The notes: generated by a model from the letters alone, not told the origin. Counted from the first letter of the stretch, positions 239-28,822 are shown. The stretch is DNA of 32,007 bases from Octopus bimaculoides (GCF_001194135.2 NC_068985.1:112132476-112164482); one strand, 5' to 3'. Made by a program: numbers and translations.

Positions 239-241
239 ATG
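239..241 (+). CDS. RPL18: RPL18 exon 1 coding part (ATG only)
   Basis: CCACCATG followed directly by donor GTGAGT at 242; phase 0 joins in frame to exon 2. Confidence 0.9.
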
Positions 242-366
242 GTGAGTTTGTGCTGATTCTTGCGATGAAACCTTTTACTTATAATCTAACGAATCCGTTG
301 TTAATTTTACCAAAATGGTTTTGCTTACGCTTATTAATCACTCTTATTTGATATATCTACTGACAG

Positions 367-453
367 GGTATCGATATTTGCCATCGATTTGAGAGGAAAG
401 TGAAGAGAAAAGCCCCCAAAAGCAATGATATCTATCTCAGGTTACTCGTCAAG
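367..453 (+). CDS. RPL18: RPL18 exon 2
   Basis: CAG| acceptor and |GTAAGA donor; encodes [29 protein letters not shown], the eL18 N-terminus. Confidence 0.97.
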
Positions 454-1143
454 GTAAGACCACCACATGCGCCTCATTTCTTGTTATATTATGTTAAATA
501 TCTTCTTTTTCAACATTATATTATATAAATGATTAACGTATGGAAAAAAAATCCATCCAAATATGTGCATAACTTGTATAAAATTGTATTTCTTCCCACG
601 CACGTGAAGGAAAGGAAAAATGTGAAGTGAAAGCCGCTTATTGTTATCACCTGCGGTTTCCCCCCCCCCATCAGTTATCGTAATTAGTGGATATTGTAAC
701 ATTCCTTGCTTAATGTTAGCTCGTTTATTGTTATGGAAGGTTTTGTTCAAATGATCACAAAAAGCGGATTCTGGGTGGAATGAAATGAGATTGAAGAATT
801 TGATTTGCTTATACTTCGATAATGGTAAACGTTGGATATTTTACGGCCACTATCGCTTGGTAAGTTCGTAGTGAGACAGGCTTAATTGCAATATTTACTT
901 AAAACTCCCACCGTGGGGACACATGACAAATATACGACACCACGTGTTTAAGGTTTTAAGGCATCACCGTTGTGGCGAAGGTAAAGAATACGCACACCCG
1001 GTGTTTAGGGTTACGCCGGAAACTGGGTGGTGTGCGTATTCTGTACCACCGCCGCAGTTATATATATGAAAGCAACTCTATTTGGACATAAAAATAGGGG
1101 TTGGTTGTTAAACGGTGACTTGTCATCCCCTGAGCTGTCCTTC

Positions 1144-1213
1144 TTTCAATATATTAATGATGATGATGATTCTGACTTGTCTTCTGGTAGTCAATATCCT
1201 TCAGCTGATGGAA
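1144..1213 (+). ncRNA. Possible diverged C/D snoRNA-like sequence (paralog of family A)
   Basis: ATGATGA 1157-1163, TTCTGA 1170-1175, CAGCTGATGGA ending as in family A; no clear C' box and a weak terminal stem. Confidence 0.3.
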
Positions 1214-2944
1214 TCTGCGCCTGAAATAAAAAAGCTTTACGGTAAATTCTACAGGGACCGGGGTTCTGCGTCGTGTACAGGCTATTGTTTTTCACAACAT
1301 TTATTCACTGCTATATATAGTAATTGAGCCACGTGGGTGCTAGTTGTTAAACCTGAAGTATAAGTATTCCAACCATGGCCATCACGTTTGTAAATAACTT
1401 TTTCGTTGATATGTGTAACGAATGCTTGGAATTAGTTTACTTATGTGAAATGAAACACCTTAATGCTAATCTTAAGATGATCCACCTTAATTTAATCCTT
1501 TTGATACTAACCTGCCTATGGTACAAACTTATTTTTAAATTATCTAAATTTGAGACAAGAATGTTAATTTATGTTCCAGACACCAGATTAATGAGTTATT
1601 TTACTAAATTCTCAACTTGAATATGGTCCAAGTGTTAAAATGTTAAGATACAGTGGAAAGAATAGTATAAGGTGCATGTTTATTGGAGATGATGGGGTAG
1701 AGATTTGTCATGGTTCAAGGTAGAAGTCACTTAATGACTTATAGTAGACAAAATTCTGCACATGTAGGATGTAGAATGGTCGTCTCCTATGAGATGGGAA
1801 TAATTCTTGATTCTTTTGCAGCTGCTGTGGATACTTTGCTACAATCATAATGTGGTTCTTTGAGGGTAGTTCCATACTTTATATTTTATATATATATATT
1901 TCAGTTGGTAATTTAAATGCAAGATTAGGGTGAACATTAAATAGTCCTTTAAACAGATAAGTACATTTAAGGGGACAGGTTTATATATTCACATACATAC
2001 ATGCACTCCTGGAAATTGTAAGAAAAAACACTGCATGATTTTTTTTGTGTGTTCATAGCTCACAAATTGGTAGAAACATTATTTTTGACTGGAAAATCAT
2101 ACAGCTGCCTGCAATGTGTTTGGGTTCAAAGGGTTAAAACCCATAGAAAATGTATGATGCATTGAGCTCTGTTGGCCTTAGTGCCAACACCACCTAACAA
2201 AGTGTCTTGTGTTTTTTTTATTTTTTTTTTATTTATTAGACATAAATTTGAAAACTGATTAATTTACTGCTGCATTCTAATATTCAGATATAGAAAGGTA
2301 AGCTTCAAGGATCGAGGTGTAGGAAGTTTGTGTGCTTCAAATAGTCTTTAGAAAATATAAAAAACAACTTTCAGGAACAATAGGGATTTATTGGTGCAGA
2401 AGGTTGTGAATTTTCCATGTATCGAAGAAAAGAGGTTATTTTTACAGTTCACGGTTAGCAACTGGGGATGCTGTATATGTGAATAAACATCCAAAGTTAG
2501 GGAATGGGGTAAATAAAATCCAGGCTACATGTTTCATAGCTAGTGGAACCTTGGAAGTAATAACTATCCAAGCAAATAGTAGATCGCAAGCTACACTTTG
2601 CACCAAGAATATGTTGATTACTCAGTTTACCCTGTCATTAGGAGATCTCGTTTATTGGATATGTTGGGTGGGTTCAGAGGGTAAAAACCCACGGAAAATG
2701 CACGATGTTTCTTTTAATTCAGATGGCAAAATGTCTCAGTATCTGGGGAAGCATTATACTCCTATTGAGTCCACATGGGATCTTCTATAAAGCTGCTTGA
2801 TTTTAGATATGTACTATCTATTTAATCTTGCATCTGTTCGACCCTTTTGCCACTATCTTTTAAACTACAGTCTTAATTTTAACGTTATTTGGCTATTTCA
2901 AACAATGTTGATGACAGTTTTAATATTACTTTATTTCAAAGCAG

Positions 2945-3089
2945 GTTGTTATCAAAAGAGCTTATTTGTTAAGGGTAGTAGTATCTTATAAGGTTGGTTA
3001 ATTATAAGACAACAGAATATAGTGTCTAAAGTGGTTGACTCTCTGGAAAGATTTTTTTGAGACCCAGAGCTACTGGTACAAGTACATCA
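2945..3089 (+). ncRNA. H/ACA box snoRNA candidate, family H1 copy 1
   Basis: Hairpin 1 closed by GTTGTT/GACAAC; H box AGAATA 3014-3019. Hairpin 2 has lower stem GTGTC/GGTAC and upper stem CTCTGG/CCAGAG. ACA at 3084-3086 lies 14 nt from the upper stem. Length 145 nt. Confidence 0.65.
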
Positions 3090-3158
3090 TCTGTGTGTTA
3101 GCATCTTTTAATTTGGAAATGTAGATTAAGTGGTTCTATAGTGTAAATTAGAGTAGGA

Positions 3159-3234
3159 GTGTCTCAATGAGGAGGAAAGAATTCTGATTATCTTTTGTGA
3201 TGACTATTCAGGATCACCCAGCTGATGGAGACGC
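3159..3234 (+). ncRNA. C/D box snoRNA candidate, family A copy 1
   Basis: Stem GTGTCTC/GAGACGC; C-like ATGAGGA 3167-3173, D' CTGA 3184-3187, C' GTGATGA 3197-3203, D CTGA 3222-3225; guide TTCAGGATCACCCAG. Confidence 0.8.
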
Positions 3235-3331
3235 AACTACTATGGTTGGTTGTTAAATGCGATATAAGACTTACAGAGCATCTGCAATTCTAGTGCCCAT
3301 TAAAAGACTGGGTTGGCCATAGCCTTATCTT

Positions 3332-3467
3332 CAACCCATTAGCATTAAAATAGGCCCTATCCAGCCAAAATATTGTACTTGTTTTGTTCAAAATGGCTGA
3401 GTTTGGCCTCTTACACCTACTCTACAATGTCATTTTAAAAGTATGCAATCATGTCATCAAAATCTCA
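3332..3467. mobile_element. piggyBac-type MITE fragment of the common (TTAA)CCC(T/A)TTAGCATT family
   Basis: AACCCATTAGCATT...CTACAATGTCATTTTAAAA. Related fragments lie near 4787-4895, 6205-6403, 6548-6700, 6990-7152, 7605-7648, 10930-11155, 14385-14600 and 20020-20070, several ending AAAGGGTTA(A). Confidence 0.65.
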
Positions 3468-3781
3468 CAAATCCACGTGGACTCGCCGTCTGTAGGTGGA
3501 TCTTGTCCATAAGTACACCGAAAATTGTTGCACTAAAACTGACTTAAACTCAGCGTGCCACAATACACACTGCGCTTTCTGCTGTACAGTCACCACAATT
3601 TCTGTAGAGTGACTGGCCAGACGCTCACTAGTAAAATAGTGATTTGAAAGACAATGCAGTGGCAAATATCAAAACTCTTACAGCTGTTATACAGTCTCGC
3701 ATTGATTTCATACAGATTACTTGCTTATAGCTAGTGCAGTTGACAACTAAAATCACAGAAACCTTTTTTGGTGGACCTGTA
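3468..3781 (-). mobile_element. 5' fragment of a Tc1/mariner-like transposon (DUF4817-type HTH N-terminus)
   Basis: Minus strand begins TA-CAGGTCCACCAAAAAAGG (TIR-like) and encodes VTVQQKAQCVLWHAEFKSV..VQ then, after a frameshift, FRCTYGQDPP. Confidence 0.75.
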
Positions 3782-3891
3782 TTAGCTGCAACAAGTTGGA
3801 TATATAAAGTAAACTCGGTGGTTATCATTACAATTGAACTATACATCATCTTGCATCCGTTTAAACCTTTTATCATCATGACATCATTATT

Positions 3892-4259
3892 CGGTTATCA
3901 AAGGATCTTATTCATTGATAATATTTAATAACAATTAGGGTACTATTTGAAAAGGTTGGTTAACTTGCAGACTACACAATATCCTGTCTGAGCTGGTGAG
4001 CTGGCAGAAATGTTAGCACACCGGTTGAAATGCTTAGGGGTATTCCGCCGAAGTTGACTTCGCCTTTCATCCTTTCGGGGTCGAAGAATTAAGTACTAGT
4101 GGTGTACTGGCGTCGATCAAATTGACCGCCCCCCCCCTCCTCCTCCAAAATTTCTGCCCTTGTGCCTAGGGTAGGACATATTATAGTGTCTAAAGTGGTA
4201 GACTCAGGAAAGTTTTTTTTTTTTTTTTTAGACCCAGTGCTGCTGGCACAAGTACATTT
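3892..4259 (+). pseudogene. H/ACA family H1 copy 2, interrupted by a SINE at the hinge / H box
   Basis: Homologous 5' hairpin (GGTTATCAA...AAGGTTGGTTAA...GACTAC) and 3' hairpin (TAGTGTCTAAAGTGG...GACCCAG...AAGTACA, ACA 4254-4256) are separated by about 200 bp of SINE. Confidence 0.6.
3982..4178 (+). mobile_element. tRNA-derived SINE, internally deleted
   Basis: GGTGAGCTGGCAGAA..GTTAGCAC A-box-like head and GCCTTTCATCCTTTCGGGGTCGA core; absent from H1 copies 1 and 3. Confidence 0.75.
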
Positions 4260-4296
4260 CCTGTGTGTTAGCTTTCAATTTGGAAATGTAGATTGA

Positions 4297-4489
4297 CCCT
4301 TTCATTACTGTATTTATTTTGAGATGCTCTGTGTTTCTTTCAAAGAATTTAGTAAAAACAACTTAATTATTCAGCTAGTGTTAGGAACATAAATTGTGAC
4401 TAAGGTTTGGTGGAAGATTTTAATTCAAAACTTTTGAAAACAAGACATTTATACTAGAGTCGGTTTCAGCCAGGTTGATAACGAAAGGG
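4297..4489. mobile_element. piggyBac-type MITE
   Basis: TIRs CCCTTTCATTAC / ATAACGAAAGGG, flanked by TTGA and TTAA; paralogous cassette copies show the empty site GTAGATTAA. Confidence 0.85.
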
Positions 4490-4522
4490 TTAAATGGTTC
4501 TAGAGTTTAAATTAGAATAGTA

Positions 4523-4598
4523 GTGTCTCAATGAGGAGGAAAGAATTCTGATCATTTTTTGTGATGACCTTTCAGGATCACCCAGCTGATGGAGACAC
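4523..4598 (+). ncRNA. C/D box snoRNA candidate, family A copy 2
   Basis: Perfect stem GTGTCTC/GAGACAC; ATGAGGA 4531-4537, D' 4548-4551, C' GTGATGA 4561-4567, D 4586-4589; same guide as copy 1. Confidence 0.8.
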
Positions 4599-5399
4599 AA
4601 CTACTAATATCGGTGGTTGTTAAATGTGATTTTATAGACTTTCAGAGTATCTGCATTTCTAGTGCCCAATTCTACTACCTACCACTCATGAGTATTTCTC
4701 GCGTGTCTTTGCAATGCCGATTCCAGAAAAGTAGGAAGATATCTGCTATATATGGTTAAAAAACTAGACTTAAACTGAATATCTCTAACCCATTAGCATT
4801 CAAGCAGGCCATATCCAGCCAAAATAGTGTACTTTTGTTCAAATTGGCGGAGTCTGGCCTCACACACCCACTCTACAATGTCATTCTAAAAGTATGGAGA
4901 AATGTAGGGTTAATGAGTGCAAGTGCTCCGGTTGATACTGTTGTCATGTCACTTGACAGGTTTCTTTTGTTCTACTAAATAATGTGGATACAAATGTTTG
5001 TGACATTTTCCACCTTTTCTTCATTTTATACTCATATCCTTGCTGACTGGAGCTGGTTAGGTTGAAAAGATCCAACTAGTACCAGCCACTTAACAATGAG
5101 TGCTAGGTAGTAGTCCATTCCACTTTTTTTTTTTTTTTAATCATAAATTTGAAGGAAAATTAACTTTCTGTCGCATTCTGAAATATATTACCTGCAACAG
5201 GCTGGGTGTATAAAGTAAACTTAGTGGTTATCTTTACGATTGGAACTATGCATCATCTTGTATCCGTTTTAAACCTTTTATCATAATAACATTATTCAGT
5301 TGTTTCAAACTTCAATTAATATGTAATTTTGATCGCGGTTTTAATTTACACTACTTCAAAACAGGTTTTTATCATAGATCCAGAGGTGATATCTGGTAG

Positions 5400-5561
5400 G
5401 TTGTTATCAAGAGTTAATTAATTTGATGCCGGTATTAACTGTTGGGTACTGTCTGAAGTGGTTGGTTAACAGGCAGACAACAGAATGTGGTGTTTTATAT
5501 GCTAGACTCTTTGGAGATAGTTTATTTTTTGAGACCCAGAGCTTCTAGCAGAAGTACACAT
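5400..5561 (+). ncRNA. H/ACA box snoRNA candidate, family H1 copy 3
   Basis: GTTGTT/GACAAC basal stem, ACAGAA (ANANNA) at 5480-5485, upper stem CTTTGG/CCAGAG, ACA 5556-5558 again 14 nt from the upper stem. Confidence 0.55.
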
Positions 5562-5647
5562 CCTGGCCTTTGTTAGCAACTATGGGTTTCCAAATAAACT
5601 CGGAAATGCTGTAGATTAAATTGCTCTGGAGTGTTAATTAGTGTATG

Positions 5648-5725
5648 AGTGCCCCAAATGAGGAAGAAAGATTCTGACTATTTTTTGTGATGACTTTTCA
5701 GGATCATCCAACTGATGGAGGCACT
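5648..5725 (+). ncRNA. C/D box snoRNA candidate, family A copy 3
   Basis: Stem AGTGCC/GGCACT with a compensatory T-A to C-G change; ATGAGGA 5658-5664, D' 5674-5677, C' 5687-5693, D 5712-5715; guide TTCAGGATCATCCAA. Confidence 0.75.
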
Positions 5726-6792
5726 TTTCCTATTGCTAAATGTGATTTTATAGACTTTCAGGCAAACCTAACTGGTTTTTGAAGGATTTTGTGTAGCTAA
5801 CATGTAGAGTTCTTGTGAAGTAACTCCATATGGAATCACTAGGAGTTCCTTGTACCAAATACACTGGTGCTGTTAATTTATTTGTAAGACAGAAGACAAG
5901 ATTTTGGTTCCCAAGTGATTATTGTATCATAGCTAACGTATTTGCTTCTCCTTTTATTCTTAATTTGATTATTGTACTATGGTCATTCTGAGACGAGATT
6001 GTGAAAGATTTGGTCAAACAATCCACCCCAGTACTTAATTTTTTACTTTTAAATTTGGTAAGGTGAGGACAGGTACAGAAGCTGAACTGAAGATAGCAAA
6101 TTCAGCATTTTTACTAACCTCACCTCTTCTGAGGATTGACTGTAAGAACTAGCACACTACTATGCCAGTACCTGTAATTCGAATGTCCTATTCAGCCTCC
6201 AGCATTTATATTGACCATATCCGGCAAGAATATTCTCTCTTATGTCTAATTGACCTGATCCAGGATCTCGCACCTACCTTACAATGTTATTCTACATTAA
6301 ACAATCACATCTTTGAAATCTATGAGATAATGCATGGTTAATTCAAAACAATGTAAATCGAAAAGCATTTTGTTTGATAGAATAATCTGAACACTGAAGG
6401 GTTATTTTTCTTCTTAGTGATGTTCCCAGGTGTGTGTTGGGAAGACTTTCTTCAGAGGACCCTATGTCTCGGTCATCGCAATACTTTTTCATTGCTGCTT
6501 TAAGCATTTGGCAGCAAACCCATACTGTACATGCTGGGTTCATTTGTTTAACCCTTTGGCATCACTCACCTATCTTATAATGTAATTTTTAGACTATAAA
6601 AAAAGTGACATCACAATCCCAAGGCTGAGATAGTACATGATTAATTGAAAGTAGTGTGAATAAACAAGCATTACACTTGACCAAGTAGGTTACAGGAGCT
6701 TTTAAGCAACTGCCTTGTTTACATTGTCTATCAATGATTCCATATCTGAATGTCCTATCTGTATTTGCTCAATGCATCAACTTTATTTACAG

Positions 6793-6900
6793 CTTTACCG
6801 CTTTTTGGCCCGAAGGACCAGCTCCAAGTTCAACAAGATTATCCTGAAGCGTCTCTGCATGAGCAGAAGCAACAGACCACCGGTTCCCCTATCGCGTATT
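6793..6900 (+). CDS. RPL18: RPL18 exon 3
   Basis: TTTACAG| and |GTAAGT; encodes [36 protein letters not shown]. Confidence 0.97.
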
Positions 6901-7180
6901 GTAAGTATATTTTTCCTCGGTGTCTTATATTGTTGTGGTTGAAATAATGTTATATGCTTCATGTCTTGGGAGTTTTATATTGGAGCTTGTTTAAACTGGC
7001 CATATCTGATTCTGTCTTTGTCCGAACCAGTAGGTCCAGCCTCTCACACTCACCCTAAATCTGAAAGCTCAGAGATAGTACATGGCTACTTTAAAGCAAT
7101 GTGAATGAGTAAGAATTGCATTTGACAGAGTAATCCAAATGCTAAAGGGTTACGTTCCTTAAAAACTTGACTGTTAATAT

Positions 7181-7605
7181 GGTGAAGGCACATGGCTCAG
7201 TGGTTAGTGTCTGGCTCAGTGGTTAGTGTCTGGCTCACAATCCTGAGGTAATGAGTTCAATACCTGGACCAGGTTGTATCCTGTGTTCTTGAGCAACACA
7301 CTTTATTTTACATTGTTCCAGTTCACTCAGCTGTGGAAGTGAATTGCAACATCACTGGTGCCAAGCTGTATCAGTGTTTGCCTTTCCCTGTGTGGTAAGA
7401 AGCTTGCTTCCCAACCATGTGGTTCCAGGTTCAGTCCCACTGCATGGCACTTTGAGCAAATGTCTCAAGATACTTATACCAGAGCCTTGTGAGTGGATTT
7501 GGTAGGCAGAAACTGAAAGAGGCATAAAATAAGTTTTTGGAGATTTCTTTGACCAAAACTCTTTAAGGGTGTGCTGCAGTCAAATGACAGAAACGTAAAA
7601 TATAA
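7181..7605 (+). mobile_element. Two adjacent tRNA-derived SINEs in RPL18 intron 3
   Basis: GGCTCAGTGGTTAG A-box (locally duplicated) with GAGTTCAATAC B-box-like motif, then GTGTGGTAAG...GGTTCAGTCCCACTG...GCCTTGTGAGTGGATTTGGTAG, as at 27987 and 28452. Confidence 0.8.
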
Positions 7606-7726
7606 TAAGCATTGCATGATAGAATAATCTGGATGCTAAAGGGTTAATTTGAATCCTACTCAAGTTTGTTAGTATTAATTTATTGTCTCTGAAGTTGCTT
7701 CATTTAATTGCATTTTCTTTGCGCAG

Positions 7727-7822
7727 GTACGACACATGAAGGGACAAGACGAGGATAAGATAGCTGTGGTTGTTTCTACAGTCACTGATGACATTCGTCT
7801 GCACTCAGTGCCCAAGTTGAAG
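7727..7822 (+). CDS. RPL18: RPL18 exon 4
   Basis: TTTTCTTTGCGCAG| and |GTAAAT; encodes VRHMKGQDEDKIAVVVSTVTDDIRLHSVPKLK. Confidence 0.95.
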
Positions 7823-8358
7823 GTAAATTTTCTCTTTGGTATTCAGTGTTTGGCTGGTTATTACCCAACCCATCTATTGTAATGTTGTACTATTTCTCCT
7901 TTCTTTTATGGATGAGGTCTCTTGTTTTCTTTGTTTCCTAACTTCAGCGTATTTACCGTAAATGTCAGTTGCTTGTATGATTGGTATTATTTCATTTGCA
8001 GCTAAACCTTGTTTCTGTTGATCAACGAAATGAAAGTACTAAAAATGCCCTGTTTCAATCTAAAATACTGCTTAATTTTATTTGTGGGTTGTTGCTTAGA
8101 TTTCATTAGTTGTGACCCTTTGTATTCTTTAGTGTAGATATTGAGCAACCAACACTAACCTGGATTCCTGGATATATATTTGGTGTTAGACCTGTTGCTC
8201 TTCCATTATTACAAGCTTAACAAAGCTATTGTTATGTGTGTGTGTGGCTTCATGATTAGGGTATTCAGTTCATAATCACATGGTCATGTGTTGAATTCCC
8301 ATTCTCTGAGTGCAAGTTTTAATGCGAGGATCTTAAAAATTAGTACTACTGCTTATAG

Positions 8359-8435
8359 TGACCACTATGATGATAATCACTTCCGTGGTTCTGATTGTTT
8401 AGTGATTTGCATCTAGCCAATCCACTGAGTGGTCG
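8359..8435 (+). ncRNA. C/D box snoRNA candidate, family B copy 1
   Basis: Stem GACCAC/GTGGTC, box C ATGATGA 8367-8373, D' CTGA 8391-8394, D CTGA 8425-8428; guide TCTAGCCAATCCA. Confidence 0.85.
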
Positions 8436-8445
8436 GTTAATGTTT

Positions 8446-8575
8446 AACTGTTCATATACTGATGTGTCTAAGACTTATTACAAGCATCCTCTTTGAGAGT
8501 GATCTAAATTAAAAGTTCCCATGTTGATTTATGTTCCAAACACCAGTTGGTTTATTCAGTTTTCAATAAACATAG
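8446..8575 (+). ncRNA. Possible H/ACA snoRNA, family H2
   Basis: AAATTA (ANANNA) 8506-8511 and ACA 8570-8572; homologous blocks at about 1507-1605 and 16556-16679. Confidence 0.35.
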
Positions 8576-8826
8576 TAGTCTTGAATACAACAAATCTGTT
8601 TGGGTTTGTTTGGTGTTCTAACCGGAAAAAATTAATTCCCCTTTATTTGTTCAAGCCGGCCGTATCCGAAAGCTCTATGAAATTCCTAAAAAAAAAATAA
8701 ACAAATCACGTTAATGCAAGATGAAGCCTTTCCCGCCTTTATTCAAGTATAAATATTGTGAAATTGTTTAGACCACATGGTTTTTTCAACGTTTGAAGAG
8801 AAGTGTTTATCTTGGTTGTGAAAGAA

Positions 8827-10344
8827 ATGGCGTCAGCAAGTAGCGATTCCAACTTTGAAGGATTTACGATTGATAATATTGAAAATATAAACGAAAACAA
8901 AAGTATTCTGTCTTCGGATGAATCTGATATCGATATCTGATTATTCGTCGGACAAGGAAGATTTTAATAACGGAAATGATGAAAATGATATCGTAAACAT
9001 GACAACATGGTCAAAAATCACAACACCAAACACTATTTATGATTTTACAGATAACACTGGTGCACAACATAATTTACCTCCTGATGCTTTACACAGGTAA
9101 AGTTTTTTCTGAAAATGTTGAGGAGGAAACAAACAAATATGCGCAACATTTAATTTCTGTTCGTGGAAGATACGATCCACTATGGCAGCCAACTAATACT
9201 GCGGAAATGAAAGCGTTTTATACAATTAATATTATGTTTGGTGCTAAACAGCTTCATGAACTTTTGGAGTCCCGATGTAAGGTATGGCGATCCATATATT
9301 TCGAGTATAATGTCCAAGACAAGGTATTCGAAAATATCTCAGTATTTGCATTTGACTGATTCTGCTAATGCCCCCGACAAAAGCGACCCAAACTACGATC
9401 CCCTGTACATTATACATCCTGTAATCGATTTACTTGTAAATAATTATAGAACTGTGTATCTACCTGGGAAAAATCTGTGTTGATGAGGCCATGATAGACT
9501 ATAAGGGCAGAGTACATTTTCGGCAGTACATGCCTGCCAAACCTACTAAATGGAGGATCAGGGTATGAGAAGTTTGTGAATTGGAGACTTTGATGTTTAC
9601 ACAGGTAATAAATATAATGGGAAAAGACTGCATGGATTGGGGCATGATGTTGTATGGTCTCTTACACAACCATTTCACCATCAGCACCAACACCTCTATT
9701 TTGACCGTTTTTTTTCTTCAGTGGCTTTGGCAGAAAATCTTGCTCGTGTAAGTATTTACATGTGCAGTACTGTTATGGGAAACCATACAGGTTTATCTCC
9801 CATGAAATAAAGTTTTTAAAAAAAGGAGACATTTTACAAATGTAAAAAGAAAATTTATTGGTTACTGCTTTTAAAGATAAGACAGATTTTATTTCTGTCT
9901 TCTAATGAATATATGGGTGGGGTTGATAAATCCAACCAATATCGGGCATATTACTCAGTTGGTCGACCTGGAAAGAAATGGTGGCGGTACATTTTGTGGT
10001 TTTTAGTTAATTTTACTTTGGTAAATTCATATTGTATATGTAAAAAGCCACAAAGTACCTCCACCACCAAAAGACTGAAATTTCGGGTTGACATCGCATC
10101 TTAGTTATGTGAGGGCTTTTCTTCTAGAAAGCACAGAACTGGGAGAAAAGCAAAATTAACTGAGGTGGTGTCAACAGAGAAAATATTGACTTCCATCAAG
10201 TCGAAAAAATAAATGGAAGAAAGAAAAGTTTGTAGACTGTTCGCTGCGAAAGGATATCAGGTTGAGACTTCATATATTTGTTAGTTTTGCAAAGTGCCCT
10301 TGTGTAAAAGGTGCTTTGGACAGTTTCATGGCATAAGTGTATAA
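8827..10344 (+). pseudogene. Decayed piggyBac (PGBD4-like) transposase in RPL18 intron 4
   Basis: MASASSDSNFEGF start, WQPTNTAEMKAF, DPLY..HPVIDLL, VDEAMIDYKGR..QYMPAKPTKW, LYFDRFFSSV, MGGVDKSNQ..YY...KKWW, and a Cys-rich tail. Many frameshifts and stops plus an internal deletion; termini not found. Confidence 0.9.
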
Positions 10345-11199
10345 TTTTTTATATTCCTTTTCATTTTATTATATAATATGTGAAGTGAGAACTACATATT
10401 AATTTTCAGTATGTTACACACCTGTATTCACCTTTGTCTCATCTGTTAATGAGATTTTTTTTATTAGATGCATTCTGTTACGTAAATGAATTTGTTAAAT
10501 TGTATAAGAGTGCATAGCCAATGCTATATTGACTAGTAAAAGAGTTTTGTACTTTATTTTCAATGATAACGTTTGAATGAAATATAGAAAAGAGTAAAAT
10601 CTATCGATTACACCTGTATTTTAATTAATTCAAATTAATGTACCTCATCTTGAAAAATGTAAAATTGTTGGCAGTTGACACCTGGGATAGTTTTGGCAGC
10701 AAACCAAACAGGTATATTGTATTAAGAATCTGAATTTTAGTGTTTATTTATAATGTTATTGTTTTTACATCTGTTAATTAAATTTACCTGCCCATAAAAG
10801 TCAAATTTAGTCAGAAAGATCAGCTAAAATTACGTAATAAGTACCCATTTACAAAGTTTCAAAGCTGTGTGTAGAAAATTAACAAAGTTACAAGCAAATA
10901 CTATGGACACTCCACTTGAACCTGAATAAATCAAAATTAATGTGAACAGATAAGCATTACATTTGACAGATTAATCTGAACACTAAAGGGTTAAACTAGC
11001 CAGATCCAGCCTCTCACACCTGTCCTACAATGTCTTAAAAATAAGCAGTCACCATTATGAAAGTCTCAAAGCTACAAGATAATCTCTGATTAATTCAAAA
11101 CAATGCAAATAAATAGGGATAACAGGACAGAATAATCTGAATGCTAAAGGGTTGATATCCACTTTTTCATGCTTGTAAGGGTTGGGTGGCACATGCACA

Positions 11200-11700
11200 C
11201 CCTCTTTGCTCAGTTTCTGTCTACCAAGCTCACTCAGGAGGCTTTGCTTCGCTCTGGGCCATAGTCAAGATGGTGCATCAGTGGACTGAACCCAAGACCA
11301 CACGGTTGGTAGACAAACTACTTCAACCCCACTGCCATGCTTGCTTCACTTTAAAACCTTGTTCTGATACATATATAAAGGGGTCATGGGTAAAAACCGC
11401 CTTCAATAATGAATGACCATGGGATTGCACTTCGAATGTTATTTTCCGAGGCAAATGTCTGGGCATGGTTGTTTATGGAAGACCAGCCTTTTCTCTCCGT
11501 GACAGTGGTGTTATCCAAGGGAGAAGCAAAGTTCGGTAAAGCTTGGCACCAGTGATGTTGCAACTCGTTTCTGCAGCTGAGTGAACTGGAGCAATGTGAA
11601 ATAAAAGGACTTGCTCAAGAACATAATGCACAGTCCAGTCTGGGAATTGAACTCACTATCTCCTGATTGTGAGCCCAGTGCTCTGTCCACCGAGCCATGC
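11200..11700 (-). mobile_element. SINE fragments on the minus strand
   Basis: Reverse complements of the SINE families at 7181 (ending CCGAGCCATGC) and 7389. Confidence 0.7.
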
Positions 11701-11733
11701 ATATATATACATGTGTGTGTACATATATATATA

Positions 11734-11799
<66 letters not shown>
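11700..11799. repeat. (TA)n(CA)n compound microsatellite
   Basis: Seen directly; ends about 12 nt upstream of family B copy 2. Confidence 0.95.
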
Positions 11800-11800
<1 letters not shown>

Positions 11801-11811
11801 CAGATATAAAC

Positions 11812-11884
11812 TGACCACTATGATGAAAACCTCTTCCACGACTGATTGTTTGTGATCGTATCTAGCCAATCCACTGAGTGGTCA
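11812..11884 (+). ncRNA. C/D box snoRNA candidate, family B copy 2 (divergent D' guide)
   Basis: Stem TGACCACT/AGTGGTCA, C 11820-11826, D' 11842-11845, D 11874-11877; D guide identical to the other copies. Confidence 0.85.
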
Positions 11885-12475
11885 CGTTTATATGCATAAG
11901 AGTTATTTTTTATTTCTAGGAAGATTGTACATCTTTATTTTGATATAGTGCAGAGATGGTCATTATATTTGTTCAGTTTTGCTATTAGTCATTAAATTAT
12001 ATTTGAGATTTCCCCTGCCTCTTTTGTTAGATTTTGCATCTTCTTTTTTTCATGCTGGCATGGATTATATGAATTTTGTTGGGGCGGATTTTTGACTGCC
12101 AAAAGAATTGGTGAGACTTAGCTACAGCAGTTACCAACAGTACTAGGTTTGCTGTTTCACAGTAATTTACTCAAAGGAATTTTTAGTCCCTTATTTCTAT
12201 TGTTTTTGGCGGGTGTTTTGATATTTAGGACATGACGTTCTTCTACAAATGCTACAAACATTACATAGTACAAGGGCCAAATGTTATTTATTCACTTGTG
12301 CATTATGTGATCAATCTAAATGGAATCTAGCCACCATCTGTATGACTTTGGTTTACAGTAATGAGTATAATATTAATTCCTTGACCACCTGCAAGATTTA
12401 AGCCATTCTCACCTTAGCCCCTTTGCCAGAGTTGTTACTCGTTCCCCTTTATTCACTTCAACTAACTGATCTGAC

Positions 12476-12550
12476 TGACCACTATGATGAAAACTCCTTC
12501 CGTGGCTCTGATTGTTTGTGATTGCTTCTAGCCAATCCACTGAGTGGTTA
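12476..12550 (+). ncRNA. C/D box snoRNA candidate, family B copy 3
   Basis: C 12484-12490, D' 12508-12511, D 12540-12543, stem ACCAC/GTGGT. Confidence 0.85.
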
Positions 12551-12572
12551 AAAAGTTGAATGAATTTTTTAA

Positions 12573-12652
12573 GGCAGATTTTTTGATGGCCTGGTGGCTT
12601 TATCTAGGAGCACAGGGTTATTTGTACCAGGGCCAAGTAACTGCCAACAGTT
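12573..12652 (+). ncRNA. H/ACA-like 3' hairpin module (family H3)
   Basis: Lower stem GGCAG/CTGCC, upper stem CCTGGT/ACCAGG, ACA 12647-12649 at 15 nt from the upper stem; no 5' hairpin visible. Confidence 0.3.
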
Positions 12653-13201
12653 TTTATAATTGAATCTTCCGTCCAAATTATAATATGCCATTTTTTGTTT
12701 GCTCAAAGGAACGGCTGGCTTGGGGAGCAGTTTTGTCAATGAGGTAATTTAGGTATCTTGATGTACTCAAATTACTGGCAGAGAAGATAGTCAATACTCT
12801 TTATGTGCAATGTATGGATATGTCAGAAATTATCTAAGGCATCTTTGATATTTATATACTGCAGATCTAATAGATATATTCAAAAGGAATTTTCAATCCC
12901 TTGTTCCAAGTATTTTTCGACAGGATCTTGACAAATTTTTCTTTCTACAAACTACATAATCATGTTGAAAAAGGTACTTCAATTCAACCGGGATATTGTA
13001 ACAAGAGGGGTCAATTATACTCATTTGTGCATTATATGCTCCTCAATCTAAATGCAATTTATCCGTGTGACTTTGGTTTACAGTAATGAGTATAATATTA
13101 ATTCCTTGACCATCTGCAAGATTTAAGCCATTCTCACCTTAGCCCCTTTGCCAGAGTTGTTACTCACTCCCCCTTTATTCACTTCAACTAACTGATCTGA
13201 C

Positions 13202-13276
13202 TGACCACTATGATGAAAACTCCTTCCGTGGCTCTGATTGCTTGTGATTGTTTCTAGCCAATCCACTGAGTGGTTA
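13202..13276 (+). ncRNA. C/D box snoRNA candidate, family B copy 4
   Basis: C 13210-13216, D 13266-13269, same guides and stem. Confidence 0.85.
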
Positions 13277-13848
13277 AGTTTATGTACACAAGGTATGAAA
13301 ATATTTTATACCTGTTTAGTTATTGTTAGTCAGTAAAATGTATCTGGGATTTCTATCTCTTTTGTAATGTTTGTTAAGTCTAATGTGTTAATATGAATTT
13401 TTTGACAGCCTGATGGCTTTATCCAAGACATAGTATATCTAGGAGCACAGGGTTATTTGTATGAAGTCAAGTAACTGCCAAGGGTTTTTATAATTGAACA
13501 TTCCATCGGTCTATGTTATGATGTGCTATTTTTTGTTTAATCCCTTGTTCCAATTATTTTTGCACGGGATCTTCACAAACTTTTCTACTTTCTACCAACT
13601 TTTCATAACCATGCTGAAAAAGGTACTTTAATTCAACCGGGATATTGTAACAAAGGGGTCAGATATACTCATTTGTGCATTGTATGCTCCTTGATCTAAA
13701 TGCAATTTATCCGTGTGACTTTGGTTTACAGTAATGAGTATAATATTAATTCCTTGACCACCTGCAAGATTTAAGCCATTCTCACCTTAGCCCCTTTGCC
13801 AGAGTTGTTACTCGTTCCCCTTTATTCACTTCAACTAACTGATCTGAC

Positions 13849-13923
13849 TGACCACTATGATGAAAACTTCTTCCGTGGCTCTGATTGTTTGTGATTGCTT
13901 CTAGCCAATCCACTGAGTGGTTA
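13849..13923 (+). ncRNA. C/D box snoRNA candidate, family B copy 5
   Basis: C 13857-13863, D 13913-13916, same guides and stem. Confidence 0.85.
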
Positions 13924-13939
13924 AAAAGTTAAATGAATT

Positions 13940-14034
13940 ATATGAATTTTTTTAGGCAGATTTTTTGATGGCCTGGTGGCTTTATCTAGGAGTACACGGT
14001 TATTTGTACCAGGGCCAAGTAACTGCCAACAGTT
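13940..14034 (+). ncRNA. H/ACA-like 3' hairpin module (family H3) with H box
   Basis: ATATGA (ANANNA) 13940-13945, same hairpin, ACA 14029-14031; no 5' hairpin. Confidence 0.3.
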
Positions 14035-14896
14035 TTTATAATTGAATCTTCCATCAGTCCAAGTTATAATATGCCATTTTTTGTTTGCTCAAAGGAAAGG
14101 CTGGCTTGGGGAGCAGTTTTGTCAATGAGGTAATTTAGGTATCTTGATGTACTCAAATTACTGGCAGAGAAGATAGTCAATACTCTTTATGTGCAATGTA
14201 TGGTCAAGTGTGTTTGCATTGGTCTTAATTTTTAGAGCAAGGAAATTCCTTTAAGTTATTTGTGCATCAGTATGGTGCAGAAATGGTTATTACATTGAGG
14301 TAATACAATATATTTAGGGCTTCTCTGGTATTTGAAGCCTGTTTATAAAAAGCAGAAGTCATAAATTTTATAATGTTGTGTATGTTCGTTAAGTTTACCG
14401 CTTCAGGTTTCATTTAATTTTGGCAACTGTTATACTTTTTATTACATTGTTTAATAGCTTCAAGATTTTGATGCTGTGATTGTTTATTTTTTTAGAATGA
14501 CATTATTGGGTCAGTATGAGGCTAAATCCAGTTGGTTTGATAAAACAGGTAGAATATTTGGTCCAGGTGTAGCCAGTTTAAATATTCGGGGTTCAGCTGG
14601 GTTAGTGAATGGTTAGCTTGTATGTGATAGCTGCACCAGCTGGACTATCACAACCCTTCAAGCTTTCTGTCAAACACCTTTTGAATTTGTAGGCTTTTTA
14701 GGCGACTGGTTTCAAACCTTTTTAGCAGGAGCAACCTCGTGTTTATAAAAATCCTGCAGTTTTTATATATGACTTCTTTTTTAATGGTGGTTTGTGACTT
14801 GTGTGGTATTTAGCTGCCACTTTCTCATTTGCAGCTGTTCAAATAAAGTTCTATGGTAATATTATCTTGTACTGAGAGCCTGCTTTGTCTTTCCAG

Positions 14897-15020
14897 ATCT
14901 GTGCTCTGAGGATGACAGACCAAGCTCGCGCTAGAGTTCTTAAGAGTGAAGGTGAGATTTTGACCTTTGACCAGTTGGCAATGATAGCACCCAAGGGCAG
15001 ACATACCTCCCTGCTACAGG
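14897..15020 (+). CDS. RPL18: RPL18 exon 5
   Basis: CTTTCCAG| and |GTAAGT; encodes [41 protein letters not shown] plus 1 nt. Confidence 0.96.
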
Positions 15021-15125
15021 GTAAGTATTTTAATATTTAGTTCTGTTCTTGTGGTGACCTAATAATAATAATAATGCAAGCGTTAGAATTGGCTCGTTAC
15101 TGTTTCGACTTATTTCTTTTTGCAG

Positions 15126-15195
15126 GATGTCGTAAAGGCCGCAAGGTTTATCGCCATTTCGGTCCGGCACCTGGTGTTCCCCACAGTCACACTAA
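15126..15195 (+). CDS. RPL18: RPL18 exon 6
   Basis: TTTTGCAG| and |GTAAGT; encodes (G)[22 protein letters not shown](K). Confidence 0.96.
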
Positions 15196-16123
15196 GTAAG
15201 TATCTTCCTGTTTTGTTTTCTTTTTACCCTGCTACCCTCTGGTGTTAGCTACCTCTTTCTGAGGTCTCCACTGAGTAATTAACATAATTTTAACTCTTGG
15301 CTGTGGCTCAAGTACAACTTAGGGACAATATGTATTAGATTAGGTAAATCTATTTCTATTATTGGAACTAAAATAAGATGCACCCGTTCCTTTGTTTTAA
15401 TGCCTACCATTCCATCCTTGCACGGTCTGGCTGGAATTTGAGGCAGCTTTTCTATGGTAGGATGCTCATCCTGATGCTAACTTCCAGTTTCTCAGTAAAT
15501 AGTTTCTCCATCCTCACTGGACATTTTTCCATGAAAGACTGCAACATCACTTTTATGCCAGTGACACCCAACCCATTTACAACTATGCTACAGTCATATG
15601 CATGTGTATATGTGTGGATATATGTACATATGCAACAGGCTTCTCTTTGTTTCTGTCCACTCCTGATGCTTAGGTTTGCTCAGGCTACCAAATGTCAGAC
15701 TGTTCACCATTTTTAAAAAATTAATTTCTCTTAGCATCAGTTTGCCTCCCAATTTCTTTGTGTGATTATGATCCAAGCACAATATTTTTGTTGTTTTGGA
15801 TGGCTTTGTAAAGGAAGCTGTGCTATTGGTGATGACATAGAGCTGCGAAGGTTATCTGAATTGATTTGTCTCAATCACCAGTTTCATTCGTTTATACCAT
15901 TCCATCTGAGATTGTTCCTAGTTCTTTGTTACAAACTTTTTGTTCTAACGTGATCTTAATTTACACCAAATAATTATTTTCAAAGTTTAGGTGCCTACCT
16001 ACACAGCAGCCATACCTGTATGTTAGGTTGATTTTGATTAAAATATAATAATGGTGATTTAATTATGTTGTTTTTATCCTTGCAGCTTTGTTTTAATCCC
16101 TTTCATCAATCTTTTTCTTTCAG

Positions 16124-16199
16124 GCCATATGTACGTTCTAAAGGCCGAAAATTTGAACGGGCTCGGGGTCGCAGGAAGAGCACAGGTTTCAAGAACTAA
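16124..16199 (+). CDS. RPL18: RPL18 exon 7 (stop TAA 16197-16199)
   Basis: CTTTTTCTTTCAG|; encodes (K)PYVRSKGRKFERARGRRKSTGFKN*, the conserved eL18 C-terminus. Confidence 0.97.
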
Positions 16200-27452: not shown

Positions 27453-27765
27453 GGTGCAGGCATGACTGTGGTAAGACACTTGCTTCACTGTGTCTTTTAC
27501 TACAGCCTCGGGCCGACCAGAGCCTTGTGAGTTGATTTGGAAGATGGAAACTGAAAGAAGCCTGTTGTATGTATGTATTTATGTGTCTGTGTTTGTCCCC
27601 CATCACTGCTTGATGGCTGGTGTTGGTGTGTTTACATTTCTGTAACTTAGTGGTTCAGCAAAAGAGACTGATAGTATAAGTACAGGGCTTTAAAACAGTT
27701 AAGTTCCAGGGGCTCGGTTTGGCTGCAGTCAAATGACCAAAACAAGTAAAAAAAAATAAAAGAAT
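27453..27765 (+). mobile_element. tRNA-derived SINE (deleted copy)
   Basis: Shares AGCCTCGGGCCGACC..GCCTTGTGAG..GATTTGG..GAAACTGAAAGAAGCC and the GCAGTCAAATGAC tail. Confidence 0.75.
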
Positions 27766-27986
27766 ATATCTTCGACCTGGTGAGTAGCTATAGCAGTACC
27801 CCTCCATTCAGGTAATTACTAGTTCTGAGCTTCCGCTAGCTAGGAAATATATGTAACCTGAATTTTACCTGTTCCATTCCCTAAATTTTGGATTTTTATT
27901 CGCATACACAACAACCACAGTTGCTAACCGTGAACTATAAAATAACTTTTTGCAGATTATTGAACTTTGATATGGGAAAAATTTAC

Positions 27987-28342
27987 GTGGCAGTGCGGTA
28001 AGTAGCTTGCTTACCAGCCACATGGTTCCCGGTTCAGTCCCACTGCGTGGCACCTTGGGCAAGTGTCTTCTACTATAGCCTCGGGCTGACCAAAGCCTTG
28101 TGAGTGGATTTGGTAGATAGAAACTGAAAGAAGCCTGTCGTATATATATGTGTGTTTGTCCCCCCAACATTGCTTGACAACCGATGCTGGTGTGTTTACG
28201 TTCCCATAACTTAGCGGTTTGGCAAAAAAGACCGATAGAATAAGTACTAGGCATCCAAAGAATAAGTTCTGGGGTCGATTTGCTCGACTAAAGGCGGTGC
28301 TCCAGCATGGCCGCAGTCAAATGACTGAAACAAGTAAAAGAG
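27987..28342 (+). mobile_element. tRNA-derived SINE, near full length
   Basis: GGTAAGTAGCTTGCTTACC..CCACATGGTTCCCGGTTCAGTCCCACTG head and GCAGTCAAATGACTGAAACAAGTAAAAG tail. Confidence 0.85.
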
Positions 28343-28451
28343 TAGTTGTTTTTTTATACCTTCTACAGATTGCTCAAAGCTTACTAACTTCCTACACCTT
28401 GATCCTTGGATCTTACCATTAGATACAATTATATATAATTCACATGCACAG

Positions 28452-28822
28452 ACAGGAGTGGCTGTGTGGTAAGTAGCTTGCTTACCAACCACATGGTTCC
28501 AGAGACAGTCCCACTGCATGGCACCTTGGGCAAGTGTCTTCTACTATAGCCTCGTGCCGACCAAAGCCATGTGAGTGGATTTGGTAGACGGAATCTGAAA
28601 AGAAGCCCGTCGTATATATATATGTGTTTGTCCTCCCAACATCGCTTGACAACTGATGCTGGTGTGTTTACGTCCCCGTAACTTAGCGGTTCGGCAAAAA
28701 GTGACCGATAGAATAAGTACTAGGCTTACAAAGAATAAGTCCTGAGGACGATTTGCTCGACTAAAGGCGGTGCTCCAGCACGGTCGCAGTCTAATGACTG
28801 AAACATGTAAAATAGTAAAGAG
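28452..28822 (+). mobile_element. tRNA-derived SINE, near full length
   Basis: Highly similar to 27987-28342. Confidence 0.85.

Follow-up and report, generated by a model that had tools for sequence, protein, structure and literature searches.

How several snoRNAs that share a single intron come to be freed from the transcript that hosts them is the question raised by the window analyzed here, a stretch of 32,007 nt from Octopus bimaculoides. The window holds the RPL18/eL18 gene on the + strand (239-16199), composed of seven exons (239-241, 367-453, 6793-6900, 7727-7822, 14897-15020, 15126-15195, and 16124-16199) and introns that are all of the GT-AG type. The predicted 187-aa product matched Pfam PF17135 (3.5e-90) and was identical to O. 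bimaculoides XP_014781072.1. An initial, sequence-only reading had placed six or more snoRNA candidates in intron 2 (454-6792; 6339 nt) and five or more in intron 4 (7823-14896; 7074 nt), and had proposed that their release would need endonucleolytic cuts, hidden non-coding exons, or recursive splicing.

Box C/D units in introns 2 and 4

A generic, family-independent scan of the window identified seven canonical box C/D units on the + strand and none on the - strand, compared to a shuffle mean of 0.08, and an eighth unit was recovered by a covariance model only. All were sense to RPL18, as the sequence-only reading had it, and all were confined to introns 2 and 4. The units belong to two families, CD-B in intron 2 (three intact copies and one decayed) and CD-A in intron 4 (five copies), neither of which corresponds to a recognised Rfam family; the covariance models built for CD-A and CD-B were designated R1 and R2, respectively. 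The earlier count for intron 4 was therefore borne out by exactly five sense box C/D units, whereas that for intron 2 held for the three intact units and the decayed one but not for three H/ACA candidates, termed H1, which found no support (see below).

In intron 2, CD-B copy 1 occupies positions 3159-3234 (+; R2 87.6 bits, generic scan and alignment) and possesses box C (AUGAGGA), D' (CUGA), C' (GUGAUGA), and D (CUGA) elements closed by a 7-bp terminal stem (GTGTCTC/GAGACGC). Copy 2 lies at 4523-4598 (+; R2 87.7 bits, generic scan) and copy 3 at 5649-5724 (+; R2 88.3 bits), the latter with a compensated change in its stem (GTGCC/GGCAC). A CD-B-like relic at 1149-1216 (+; R2 18.7 bits, E 0.07) retains the boxes but has lost the terminal stem. 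It gave a BLAST match to a cuttlefish CD-B position, and its guide had no rRNA match, with 944 of 1000 shuffles equalling its best rRNA score.

In intron 4, CD-A copy 1 (A1; 8358-8436, +, R1 88.4 bits) is an old paralogue that shares 95% identity with its O. vulgaris orthologue. Copy 2 (A2; 11811-11885, +, R1 79.2 bits and alignment) has a decayed D' guide and spacing, with boxes C and D and the D guide intact. Copies 3, 4, and 5 (A3-A5) form a recent tandem array on the + strand at 12475-12551 (R1 99.0 bits; repeat families D4, D9, D10, and D20), 13201-13277 (97.2 bits), and 13848-13924 (99.7 bits). The spacers between snoRNA units are kilobases in size, TE-laden, and unconserved. Between A1 and A2 lies a frame-broken remnant of a piggyBac-type transposase (9238-10104, +), whose DDE_Tnp_1_7 pieces scored 8.7e-13, 1.9e-10, and 6.1e-06 when each was searched alone.

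CD-A copy 5 is separated by 974 nt from the 3' splice site of its intron, and the distances for the O. bimaculoides units as a whole are 0.97-6.46 kb, in agreement with the 1-6 kb estimated earlier. The corresponding range was 0.97-11 kb for all octopod copies, and of the ~60 units found across species all except one had a 3' splice site at a distance of 0.7-11 kb. Throughout, the units measured 72-81 nt and were situated on the + strand of RPL18 introns, in keeping with the length of about 60-120 nt, the sense orientation, and the translation-related host expected of box C/D snoRNAs.

Boxes, terminal stems, and predicted targets

Alignments of both families showed invariant boxes and conserved guides within scrambled flanks. 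Among 24 CD-A copies, ATGATGA (C) and CTGA (D) were invariant, and nearly every copy carried the internal boxes CTGA and TGATT/TGAAT. In CD-B, CTGA and the C' box TGATGA were invariant, while box C was AUGAGGA in octopods and AUGAUGA in cuttlefish, and the D' box, CTGA in octopods, was degenerate in the cuttlefish copies. The terminal stems of both families covary, with the compensatory changes typical of box C/D snoRNAs. For the 6-bp CD-A stem, 98.7% of cells were paired versus ≤48% when the stem was slid (0/500 shuffles), with 11 doubly changed cells and double changes in three pairs; for the 7-bp CD-B stem, 88.3% were paired versus ≤71% when slid (3/500 shuffles).

Targets were predicted with rDNA of unidentified metazoans in metagenomes, not of cephalopods. 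With moderate to weak support, the CD-A guides are predicted to pair with two 28S sites, GGCCA*UGGAAG and GGAU*UGGCU, and the CD-B guide with nt 4-16 of 18S rRNA. The CD-A D' guide would form 11-12 bp (two of them G.U) with LSU GGCCAUGGAAGU (shuffles 7/300 and 57/300) and the D guide 9 perfect bp with LSU GGAUUGGCU (shuffles 26/300), each individually weak. The CD-B D guide would form 12-13 bp with SSU nt 4-16, a score reached by 0/300 shuffles for cuttlefish. In octopods, CD-B is mismatched (C.U) at position 5, the would-be methylated nucleotide; a further possibility is that octopod CD-B acts on this extreme 5' end of 18S rRNA in a non-methylating, chaperone-like manner.

Among Rfam families, CD-A matched SNORD18 (RF00093) best, scoring 27.8 bits where the gathering score is 41, and is not a member of that family. 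Both have the same general C/D layout, with UCCGUG at the core of the D' guide, but their guides are not the same (CUUCCGUGGCU vs UGGUCCGUGUUU). In the rDNA the U18 target AAACACGGACCA does occur, and by inspection CD-A would pair with it over only ~6 bp.

Conservation and copy number across species

No intron sequence of RPL18 other than the CD-A and CD-B units was conserved as far as Argonauta and cuttlefish. CD-A was found in 5, 8, 8, 6, and 5 copies and CD-B in 3, 5, 5, 5, and 3 copies in O. bimaculoides, O. vulgaris, O. sinensis, Argonauta, and cuttlefish, respectively. Several sense units share an intron in O. bimaculoides (three plus the relic, and five) and in the four other species alike. 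The array layout has been kept since the octopus-cuttlefish common ancestor. Covariance-model searches of RPL18 from scallop, chiton, whelk, and the annelid Owenia found neither family, and the Owenia gene hosts SNORA57 instead. Judging from these genes, RPL18 hosting of CD-A/CD-B does look lineage-specific, as had been suspected, being seen in Octopus, Argonauta, and cuttlefish only.

Paralogues within an intron had bodies that were 79-94% identical and flanks at background (50.3 +/- 2.2%), which argues that two or more copies in each intron are probably under selection. Old paralogues of this kind, with background flanks and intact boxes, stems, and guides, were O. bimaculoides A1 versus A3-A5, cuttlefish A1 versus A2, and cuttlefish B1-B3. 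A1 orthologues grouped across species (support 100/99), and between O. bimaculoides and O. vulgaris the CD-A bodies shared ~95% identity, compared to 77-88% for neutral intron sequence. CD-B bodies were barely above their flanks between these two Octopus species (88-91% vs 85-89%). The distal copies A3-A5 are 96-99% identical, with flanks that are similar too, and are individually too young for selection to be visible; distal CD-A copies clustered by species, and two-unit blocks have been re-duplicated in the octopus arrays. From their sequence features and conservation, the units are very probably bona fide C/D snoRNA genes arranged sense and multi-copy within single introns.

Proposed release of the snoRNAs from RPL18 pre-mRNA

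No promoter or terminator motif common to the genera was detected at the units, nor was any upstream motif at a fixed distance, and they are therefore most likely transcribed within the RPL18 pre-mRNA, which is highly expressed. Several copies in each intron would be functional. The strong 6-7 bp terminal stems beside boxes C and D would allow core snoRNP assembly without a nearby 3' splice site. Endonucleolytic cuts in the spacer RNA, made in the pre-mRNA or after excision and debranching of the intron, would then free inner snoRNAs of ~75 nt, and exonucleases would trim to each protected snoRNP. Local duplication would expand or contract the arrays and, with them, the snoRNA dose per host transcript. 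Because at least two to three copies per intron are independently conserved, a one-per-intron exonucleolytic route would not explain all of the units. We put the probability of endonucleolytic processing of the CD-A/CD-B arrays from RPL18 pre-mRNA at about one half. The spacers were searched for conserved hairpins suited to be RNase III-type sites, and none was found. The earlier argument for additional processing stands insofar as a step beyond one-per-intron trimming is likely; it had left out sno-lncRNAs and a single snoRNP per intron, neither of which needs an endonuclease.

In the latter scheme, one unit per intron molecule assembles a snoRNP and exonucleases destroy the rest, unassembled sister copies included, with extra copies serving to raise the chance of capture for units far from a splice site. 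It makes use of the standard pathway of exonucleolytic trimming (PMC10557570), and all copies are indeed distant from the 3' splice site, in positions at which assembly coupled to splicing should be inefficient. It also predicts weak selection on every copy, which fits the body and flank identities of the paralogues, and the partial decay of the A2 D' guide and of the relic indicates that redundancy is tolerated. Stems of 6-7 bp that contain GC pairs should nonetheless give efficient assembly on each unit, and arrays of up to eight near-identical copies seem beyond the needs of redundancy. We consider a single product per intron unlikely.

H1 elements and the search for hidden exons

Each snoRNA could instead occupy an intron of its own, as in SNORD115/116, if hidden exons or recursive sites were used and the extra exons were later removed or the isoforms degraded by NMD. 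Mammalian tandem C/D arrays do employ repeated host exons (PMC11028025), and H1, part of an Octopus-specific repeat unit, always lies 60-70 nt upstream of a CD-B. H1 copies occur on the + strand at 2937-3097 (copy a), at 3894-4267 (copy b, in pieces 3894-3998 and 4176-4267), and at 5393-5569 (copy c), and AGGTTGT at the 5' edge and GTACA at the 3' edge were invariant in 6/6 aligned Octopus copies. The AG|GTTGTT sites at these edges (CAG|GTTGTT at 2943 and TAG|GTTGTT at 5398) had been taken for weak splice junctions. The frequency of AGGT proved to be at chance (26 vs 23.7 expected; 22 vs 25.1 expected), GTTGTT departs from the GTRAGT consensus at +3 to +5 and resembles none of the six GTRAGT-like RPL18 donors, and AGGTTGT is absent from the intron 4 array; recursive splice sites (ratchet points) at AG|GTTGTT were accordingly rejected. 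Moreover, nhmmer found no H1 in Argonauta, cuttlefish, or the outgroups, although the arrays of the first two are equally multi-copy, and no flank motif was common to the genera. Copy b is split by a ~177-nt insert (a MITE with inverted termini at 4003-4014 / 4147-4158), as are copies in O. vulgaris and O. sinensis, and one such H1 lineage was propagated despite the split in units whose CD-B is intact. Finally, in a spliced cuttlefish mRNA (contig L131) the annotated exons abut one another, with none extra, although transient or NMD isoforms are outside its reach. Hidden exons thus appear improbable.

H1 was also rejected as an H/ACA snoRNA. Its MFE was no better than that of shuffles (z +0.28 and -0.62), and its consensus fold lacked a hairpin-hinge-hairpin and had the conserved ACA paired within a long-range closing stem. 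Inspection of the 5' domain showed no 3' pocket strand, and a search of Rfam H/ACA families gave no match at E<=10. Orthologous H1 copies were 79-87% identical, much as their flanks were, with no excess conservation.

Three further explanations were weighed against endonucleolytic release. Should exonucleases halt at the outermost snoRNPs, sno-lncRNAs, long RNAs with a snoRNA at either end, would be the main stable products and inner copies would never be freed, a documented outcome for two snoRNAs in one intron (PMC11028025) that also accords with the failure to find a spacer cleavage signal. The chance of this seems slim, as inner copies without any guide activity would not be expected to keep guides and boxes intact for so long, and the TE-laden, unconserved spacers are unlike a functional lncRNA body. 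Independent transcription units nested in the intron, each with a promoter and a terminator of its own, are very improbable: T-runs follow some cuttlefish copies but are inconsistent in octopods, the upstream motifs noted above are lacking, and the strict sense orientation of ~60 units is what host-dependent expression predicts. It is hardly more credible that only one copy per intron functions, the others being young pseudogenes whose similarity is due to recent duplication or gene conversion, since the similarity of A3-A5 and their flanks, the clustering of distal copies by species, and the visible decay of some copies are offset by the old same-intron paralogues and the cross-species orthology of A1.

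Relation to known snoRNA clusters

The octopus RPL18 arrays are an uncommon but already known type of gene layout. The intronic snoRNA cluster is a named category (PMC11028025), and PMC3089462 and PMC2246290 cite examples from rice (Liang et al. 2002) and, for H/ACA snoRNAs, from Drosophila (Huang et al. 2004/2005). Like the octopus arrays, these clusters have several snoRNA genes per intron in host orientation and many duplicated isoforms, rely on transcription of the host, and require some processing in addition to one-per-intron trimming. The clustered type in Drosophila is H/ACA, with C/D snoRNAs at one per intron (PMC3089462), whereas the octopus arrays are box C/D; they further differ from the rice and Drosophila clusters in being homogeneous (one family per intron), in having a ribosomal-protein host, and in their kb-spaced, TE-filled spacers. 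We found no report of such arrays from lophotrochozoans in the literature.

SNORD115- and SNORD116-type arrays likewise repeat a single C/D family many times in tandem, with a copy number that varies between related species, and unequal crossing-over or gene conversion underlies their evolution (PMC11028025). Their host is non-coding, with repeated exons, one snoRNA per intron, and orphan snoRNAs, in contrast to the octopus units, which occupy single introns of a protein-coding gene, have guides with predicted rRNA complementarity, and, judging by the cuttlefish mRNA, appear not to be separated by exons. The proposed endonucleolytic step has a precedent in XendoU, which acts on U16/U18 in the Xenopus L1 gene, also a ribosomal-protein host (PMC10557570), and Rnt1 in yeast provides a further splicing-independent release of intronic snoRNAs; unlike the octopus arrays, both the U16/U18 and Rnt1 cases involve one snoRNA per intron. 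Splicing-independent endonucleolytic release is documented in Xenopus as well as in human assays in vitro (PMC10557570, PMC11028025), contrary to the notion that the route would be non-vertebrate, and both it and intronic clusters are established concepts (PMC10557570, PMC11028025).

We tentatively suggest that coleoids may possess a dedicated splicing-independent pathway, predating the octopus-cuttlefish split, that frees many identical C/D snoRNAs per RPL18 intron. If true, such a pathway would give animals a C/D-type equivalent of the polycistronic clusters of plants, one in which snoRNA dose would be set by tandem copy number.

Results

The window is part of Octopus bimaculoides chromosome CM046605.1 and carries RPL18 (eL18) on the + strand at 239-16199, with seven exons, GT-AG introns and a 187-aa product (XP_014781072.1) that matches Pfam Ribosomal_L18 at 3.5e-90. 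Since intron 2 (+) occupies 454-6792 and intron 4 (+) 7823-14896, the interval 454-14896, to which a sequence-only reading had assigned polycistronic snoRNA arrays, extends from the first base of the one to the last base of the other. A search of the whole window with Rfam at gathering thresholds gave no match. A generic, family-blind scan for box C/D units (RUGAKGA, 45-120 nt, CUGA, terminal stem of at least 5 bp) returned seven matches on the + strand, confined to introns 2 and 4 and each with a 7-bp stem, compared with none on the - strand and a mean of 0.08 in shuffled sequence. An eighth unit at 5649-5724 was missed solely because a 3-nt spacer precedes its box C; it scored 88 bits with a covariance model. 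Five units of one family, CD-A, lie in intron 4 (A1-A5; 8358-8436, 11811-11885, 12475-12551, 13201-13277, and 13848-13924), and three units of a second, CD-B, lie in intron 2 (B1-B3; 3159-3234, 4523-4598, and 5649-5724), together with a decayed CD-B relative at 1149-1216 that no longer has a terminal stem and matches no rRNA. Repeat analysis placed the true repeated units at 2978-5744 and 11842-14203. The proposed box C/D arrays are thus real, all sense, and as numerous in intron 4 as claimed (five or more), but the six or more candidates counted in intron 2 reduce to three credible snoRNA genes, as the H/ACA candidates among them fail (see below).

The best Rfam match of CD-A was SNORD18, an identity that we rejected because the score of 27.8 bits falls short of the threshold (41) and SNORD18 has another guide; neither CD-A nor CD-B therefore belongs to a curated family. 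Low-threshold Rfam matches at 11.7 kb (mir-297, mir-466, mir-3688, and others) were artefacts of a (TA)n(CA)n microsatellite at 11695-11802, directly upstream of A2.

Comparison with the RPL18 orthologue loci of O. vulgaris, O. sinensis, Argonauta hians and the cuttlefish Acanthosepion pharaonis showed that CD-A and CD-B are the only non-exon O. bimaculoides sequences, all intronic, that can be aligned by BLAST to Argonauta or cuttlefish. In O. bimaculoides, O. vulgaris, O. sinensis, Argonauta and cuttlefish, respectively, there are 5, 8, 8, 6, and 5 copies of CD-A and 3, 5, 5, 5, and 3 copies of CD-B. Neither box C nor box D varies across 24 aligned CD-A copies; D' and C' are kept and two stretches of guide sequence are also conserved, whereas flanks from different genera show no relation to one another. 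The terminal stem of CD-A shows covariation (GACCAC/GTGGTC in octopods, GGCTGC/GCAGTC in cuttlefish), with 98.7% of stem cells paired versus at most 48% when the partner is slid, and its covariation score was reached in none of 500 shuffles. The CD-B stem is 88.3% paired, its score was reached in 3/500 shuffles, and a compensatory change from T-A to C-G occurs in O. bimaculoides B3 and O. vulgaris B5; its box C reads AUGAGGA in octopods and AUGAUGA in cuttlefish. Taken together, these alignments indicate that both arrays have been conserved since the coleoid ancestor. A weak extra match to the CD-A model (20.4 bits, E 0.012) was seen in a cuttlefish intron (L003 14540-14618, +), and a CD-B-like relic of 31.4 bits, which has no O. 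bimaculoides counterpart, occurs in intron 2 of O. vulgaris (L004 11794-11866, +) and O. sinensis (L005 11404-11476, +).

All of the ~60 snoRNA units in the five species are in sense orientation. The snoRNA-bearing introns of octopods hold 4-8 units each, every one of them separated by 0.97-11 kb from the 3' splice site that follows, and four successive cuttlefish introns hold 3, 2, 1, and 2 units; only the last cuttlefish CD-A lies at the canonical distance (80 nt). CD-A and CD-B are interleaved in Argonauta, where both introns carry both families. A block of CD-B, CD-A, CD-B, CD-A in intron 2 of the Argonauta locus (L002 15146-16500) recurs in intron 4 (19559-20913, offset +4413) with exact identity over at least 215 nt and equal model scores; it reflects either segmental duplication spanning exons 3-4 in the very recent past or an error of assembly.

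Matches to the CD-A and CD-B covariance models (R1 and R2, respectively) were found in cephalopod RPL18 loci only; the same models found neither family in RPL18 of scallop, chiton, whelk or Owenia. When eight related and outgroup loci were searched with Rfam at gathering thresholds, the sole match was an H/ACA snoRNA, SNORA57, in an RPL18 intron of the annelid Owenia fusiformis (L129 14384-14517, +; 62.6 bits, above threshold), so RPL18 as a host is not confined to cephalopods. The suggestion of lineage-specific host use, followed through mollusc and annelid RPL18 introns, therefore holds for the cargo but not for the host: CD-A and CD-B appear coleoid-specific among the taxa sampled, in which octopods and a cuttlefish represent the cephalopods.

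Same-intron paralogues are 79-94% identical in their snoRNA bodies, in contrast to ~50% in their 150-nt flanks, the level of unrelated intron sequence (50.3 ± 2.2%). This result covers A1, A2 and A3-A5 compared with one another in O. bimaculoides, A1 versus A2 and B1-B3 in cuttlefish, and the Argonauta copies. A tree supports orthology of the A1 lineage in O. bimaculoides and O. vulgaris (100/99), with 95% identity between the two bodies compared with 77-88% for neutral intron sequence. Decay is visible in the D' guide of A2 and in the relic at 1149-1216, which means that the intact copies do not owe their state simply to a recent origin. The distal A3-A5 copies are recent (96-99% identity) and arose when a two-unit block was re-duplicated, as also happened in O. 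vulgaris. From this pattern of divergence we conclude that purifying selection is probably acting on at least two to three copies per intron, and the possibility that a single copy works in each intron, examined here through paralogue conservation, was disfavored.

The three intron 2 elements previously proposed as H/ACA genes (H1; 2937-3097, 3894-4267, and 5393-5569) were rejected as such. They folded no better than shuffled sequence (z of +0.28 and -0.62), the conserved 'ACA' of their consensus structure is paired in the closing stem rather than free behind a second hairpin, profile searches matched three Octopus species only, and their identity between species (79-87%) equals that of the flanks. 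Moreover, the middle copy is interrupted by a ~177-nt insert (3999-4175) with inverted termini (GGCAGAAATGTT and AAAATTTCTGCC at 4003-4014 and 4147-4158). The same interruption is present beside intact CD-B units in O. vulgaris and O. sinensis (two copies each), from which it follows that the insertion is older than the separation of the species and was carried along when the unit was re-duplicated. H1 is best read as a component of an Octopus-specific repeat unit.

Other elements were also observed in the window. A very stable ~100-nt hairpin in intron 2 (960-1062, +; MFE -50.1 kcal/mol, z = -4.98, 0/200 shuffles) has a conserved counterpart in O. vulgaris (86%, L004 3710-3786), where the gene is preceded by a second, incomplete copy (L004 2176-2229); these features point to a repeat of the foldback/MITE type, or possibly to a precursor like that of a miRNA. 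A frame-broken piggyBac-type transposase remnant (9238-10104, +; Pfam DDE_Tnp_1_7 in three separate ORF pieces) lies in intron 4 between A1 and A2. SINE-like repeats (D6, D7, D12, D13, D17, D19) occur once in RPL18 intron 3 (7388-7523) and as three adjacent copies at 27490-28817, ~11 kb downstream of RPL18, and members of another short repeat family, with ...AAGGGTTA at their end, were found at 6324-6404, 6627-6687, 7072-7152, 7582-7646, and 10913-10993.

Guides were compared with metazoan-type rDNA units taken from metagenomes (5.8S motif), which are not cephalopod; one of these (L103) was annotated by Rfam. The CD-A D' guide (CTTCCGTGGCT) is predicted to pair over 11-12 bp (2 G.U) with LSU GGCCAUGGAAGU, the CD-A D guide (GCCAATCC) to pair perfectly over 9 bp with LSU GGAUUGGCU, and the CD-B D guide core (TCAGGATCA) with its neighbours to pair with SSU positions 4-16. 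Tests against shuffled guides gave strong support for cuttlefish CD-B (0/300); among the CD-A guides, support was moderate for D' (7/300 and 57/300) and weak for D (26/300). The location of invariant guide columns inside the complementary stretches lends the predictions some added weight. The nucleotides predicted for methylation are the A of LSU GGCCA*UGGAAG, the U of LSU GGAU*UGGCU and U8 of the SSU. In every octopod CD-B copy, a C.U mismatch falls exactly on the nucleotide that would be methylated, where the cuttlefish copies are paired. We know of no modification at the predicted contact sites of either family in human or yeast, including 2'-O-methylation of 18S rRNA nt 4-16. The human-numbered identity of the 28S sites, for example a possible proximity to the SNORD50 G2863 site, was given no weight as evidence.

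Discussion

How several units would be released from one intron was considered in light of their surroundings. No promoter or terminator motif around the units was common to different genera, which argues for host-dependent transcription. The sequence-only reading had offered hidden exons and weak AG/GT junctions as one way out. AG/GT tetramers occur at chance frequency, GTTGTT is unlike all six real RPL18 donors, and sites of this kind are absent from the intron 4 array. In addition, in a spliced cuttlefish-type mRNA contig assembled from a public read run (L131, of which the 5' 453 nt fail to map to the locus), the annotated exons follow one another with no further exon between them; a second such contig (L130) is chimeric, and no Octopus transcript contig contained the exact RPL18 protein. 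No conserved spacer hairpins of the kind expected for RNase III-type sites were found. The single candidate, a 12-bp AU-rich perfect inverted repeat (13014-13025/13085-13096) ~105-190 nt upstream of A4, has a near-copy upstream of A5, is absent before A3, and was set aside as a processing signal because it is too weak and inconsistent among copies. External flanking stems were likewise dismissed on inspection, as TCAACT/AGTTGA pairing exists only at A3/A5 and is not conserved.

Our preferred reading, to which we assign a probability of about 0.5, is that the units would be co-transcribed with RPL18 and assembled into snoRNPs without need for a nearby splice site, that the spacers would be cut endonucleolytically and the products then trimmed, and that tandem copy number would set snoRNA dose. 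The main rival, in which one assembled snoRNP per intron molecule is released by exonucleolytic trimming only, seems to us unlikely. Splicing-independent endonucleolytic release is already recognised, including that by XendoU in Xenopus (PMC11028025, PMC10557570), as is the formation of a sno-lncRNA from an intron that carries two snoRNAs (PMC11028025). The processing route proposed earlier was reasonable but overstated, and it is not specifically 'non-vertebrate'.

Intronic snoRNA clusters are a recognised category (PMC11028025), to which the octopus RPL18 arrays belong; they are not a new kind of system. In Drosophila it is the H/ACA type that is clustered, with C/D snoRNAs one per intron (PMC3089462), whereas the octopus arrays are of C/D type. 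Their distinguishing features are that they are C/D-type and homogeneous, have a lophotrochozoan ribosomal-protein gene as host and have been kept since the coleoid ancestor. The giant squid genome paper gives snoRNAs as Rfam-type matches only (PMC6962438), and homology-only annotation overlooks real, conserved cephalopod snoRNA families such as these, for which Rfam gave no match here. Their predicted rRNA contact sites are open to direct testing, and homogeneous box C/D arrays within single introns offer a natural system for the study of inner-copy release and of the tuning of snoRNA dose by copy number.
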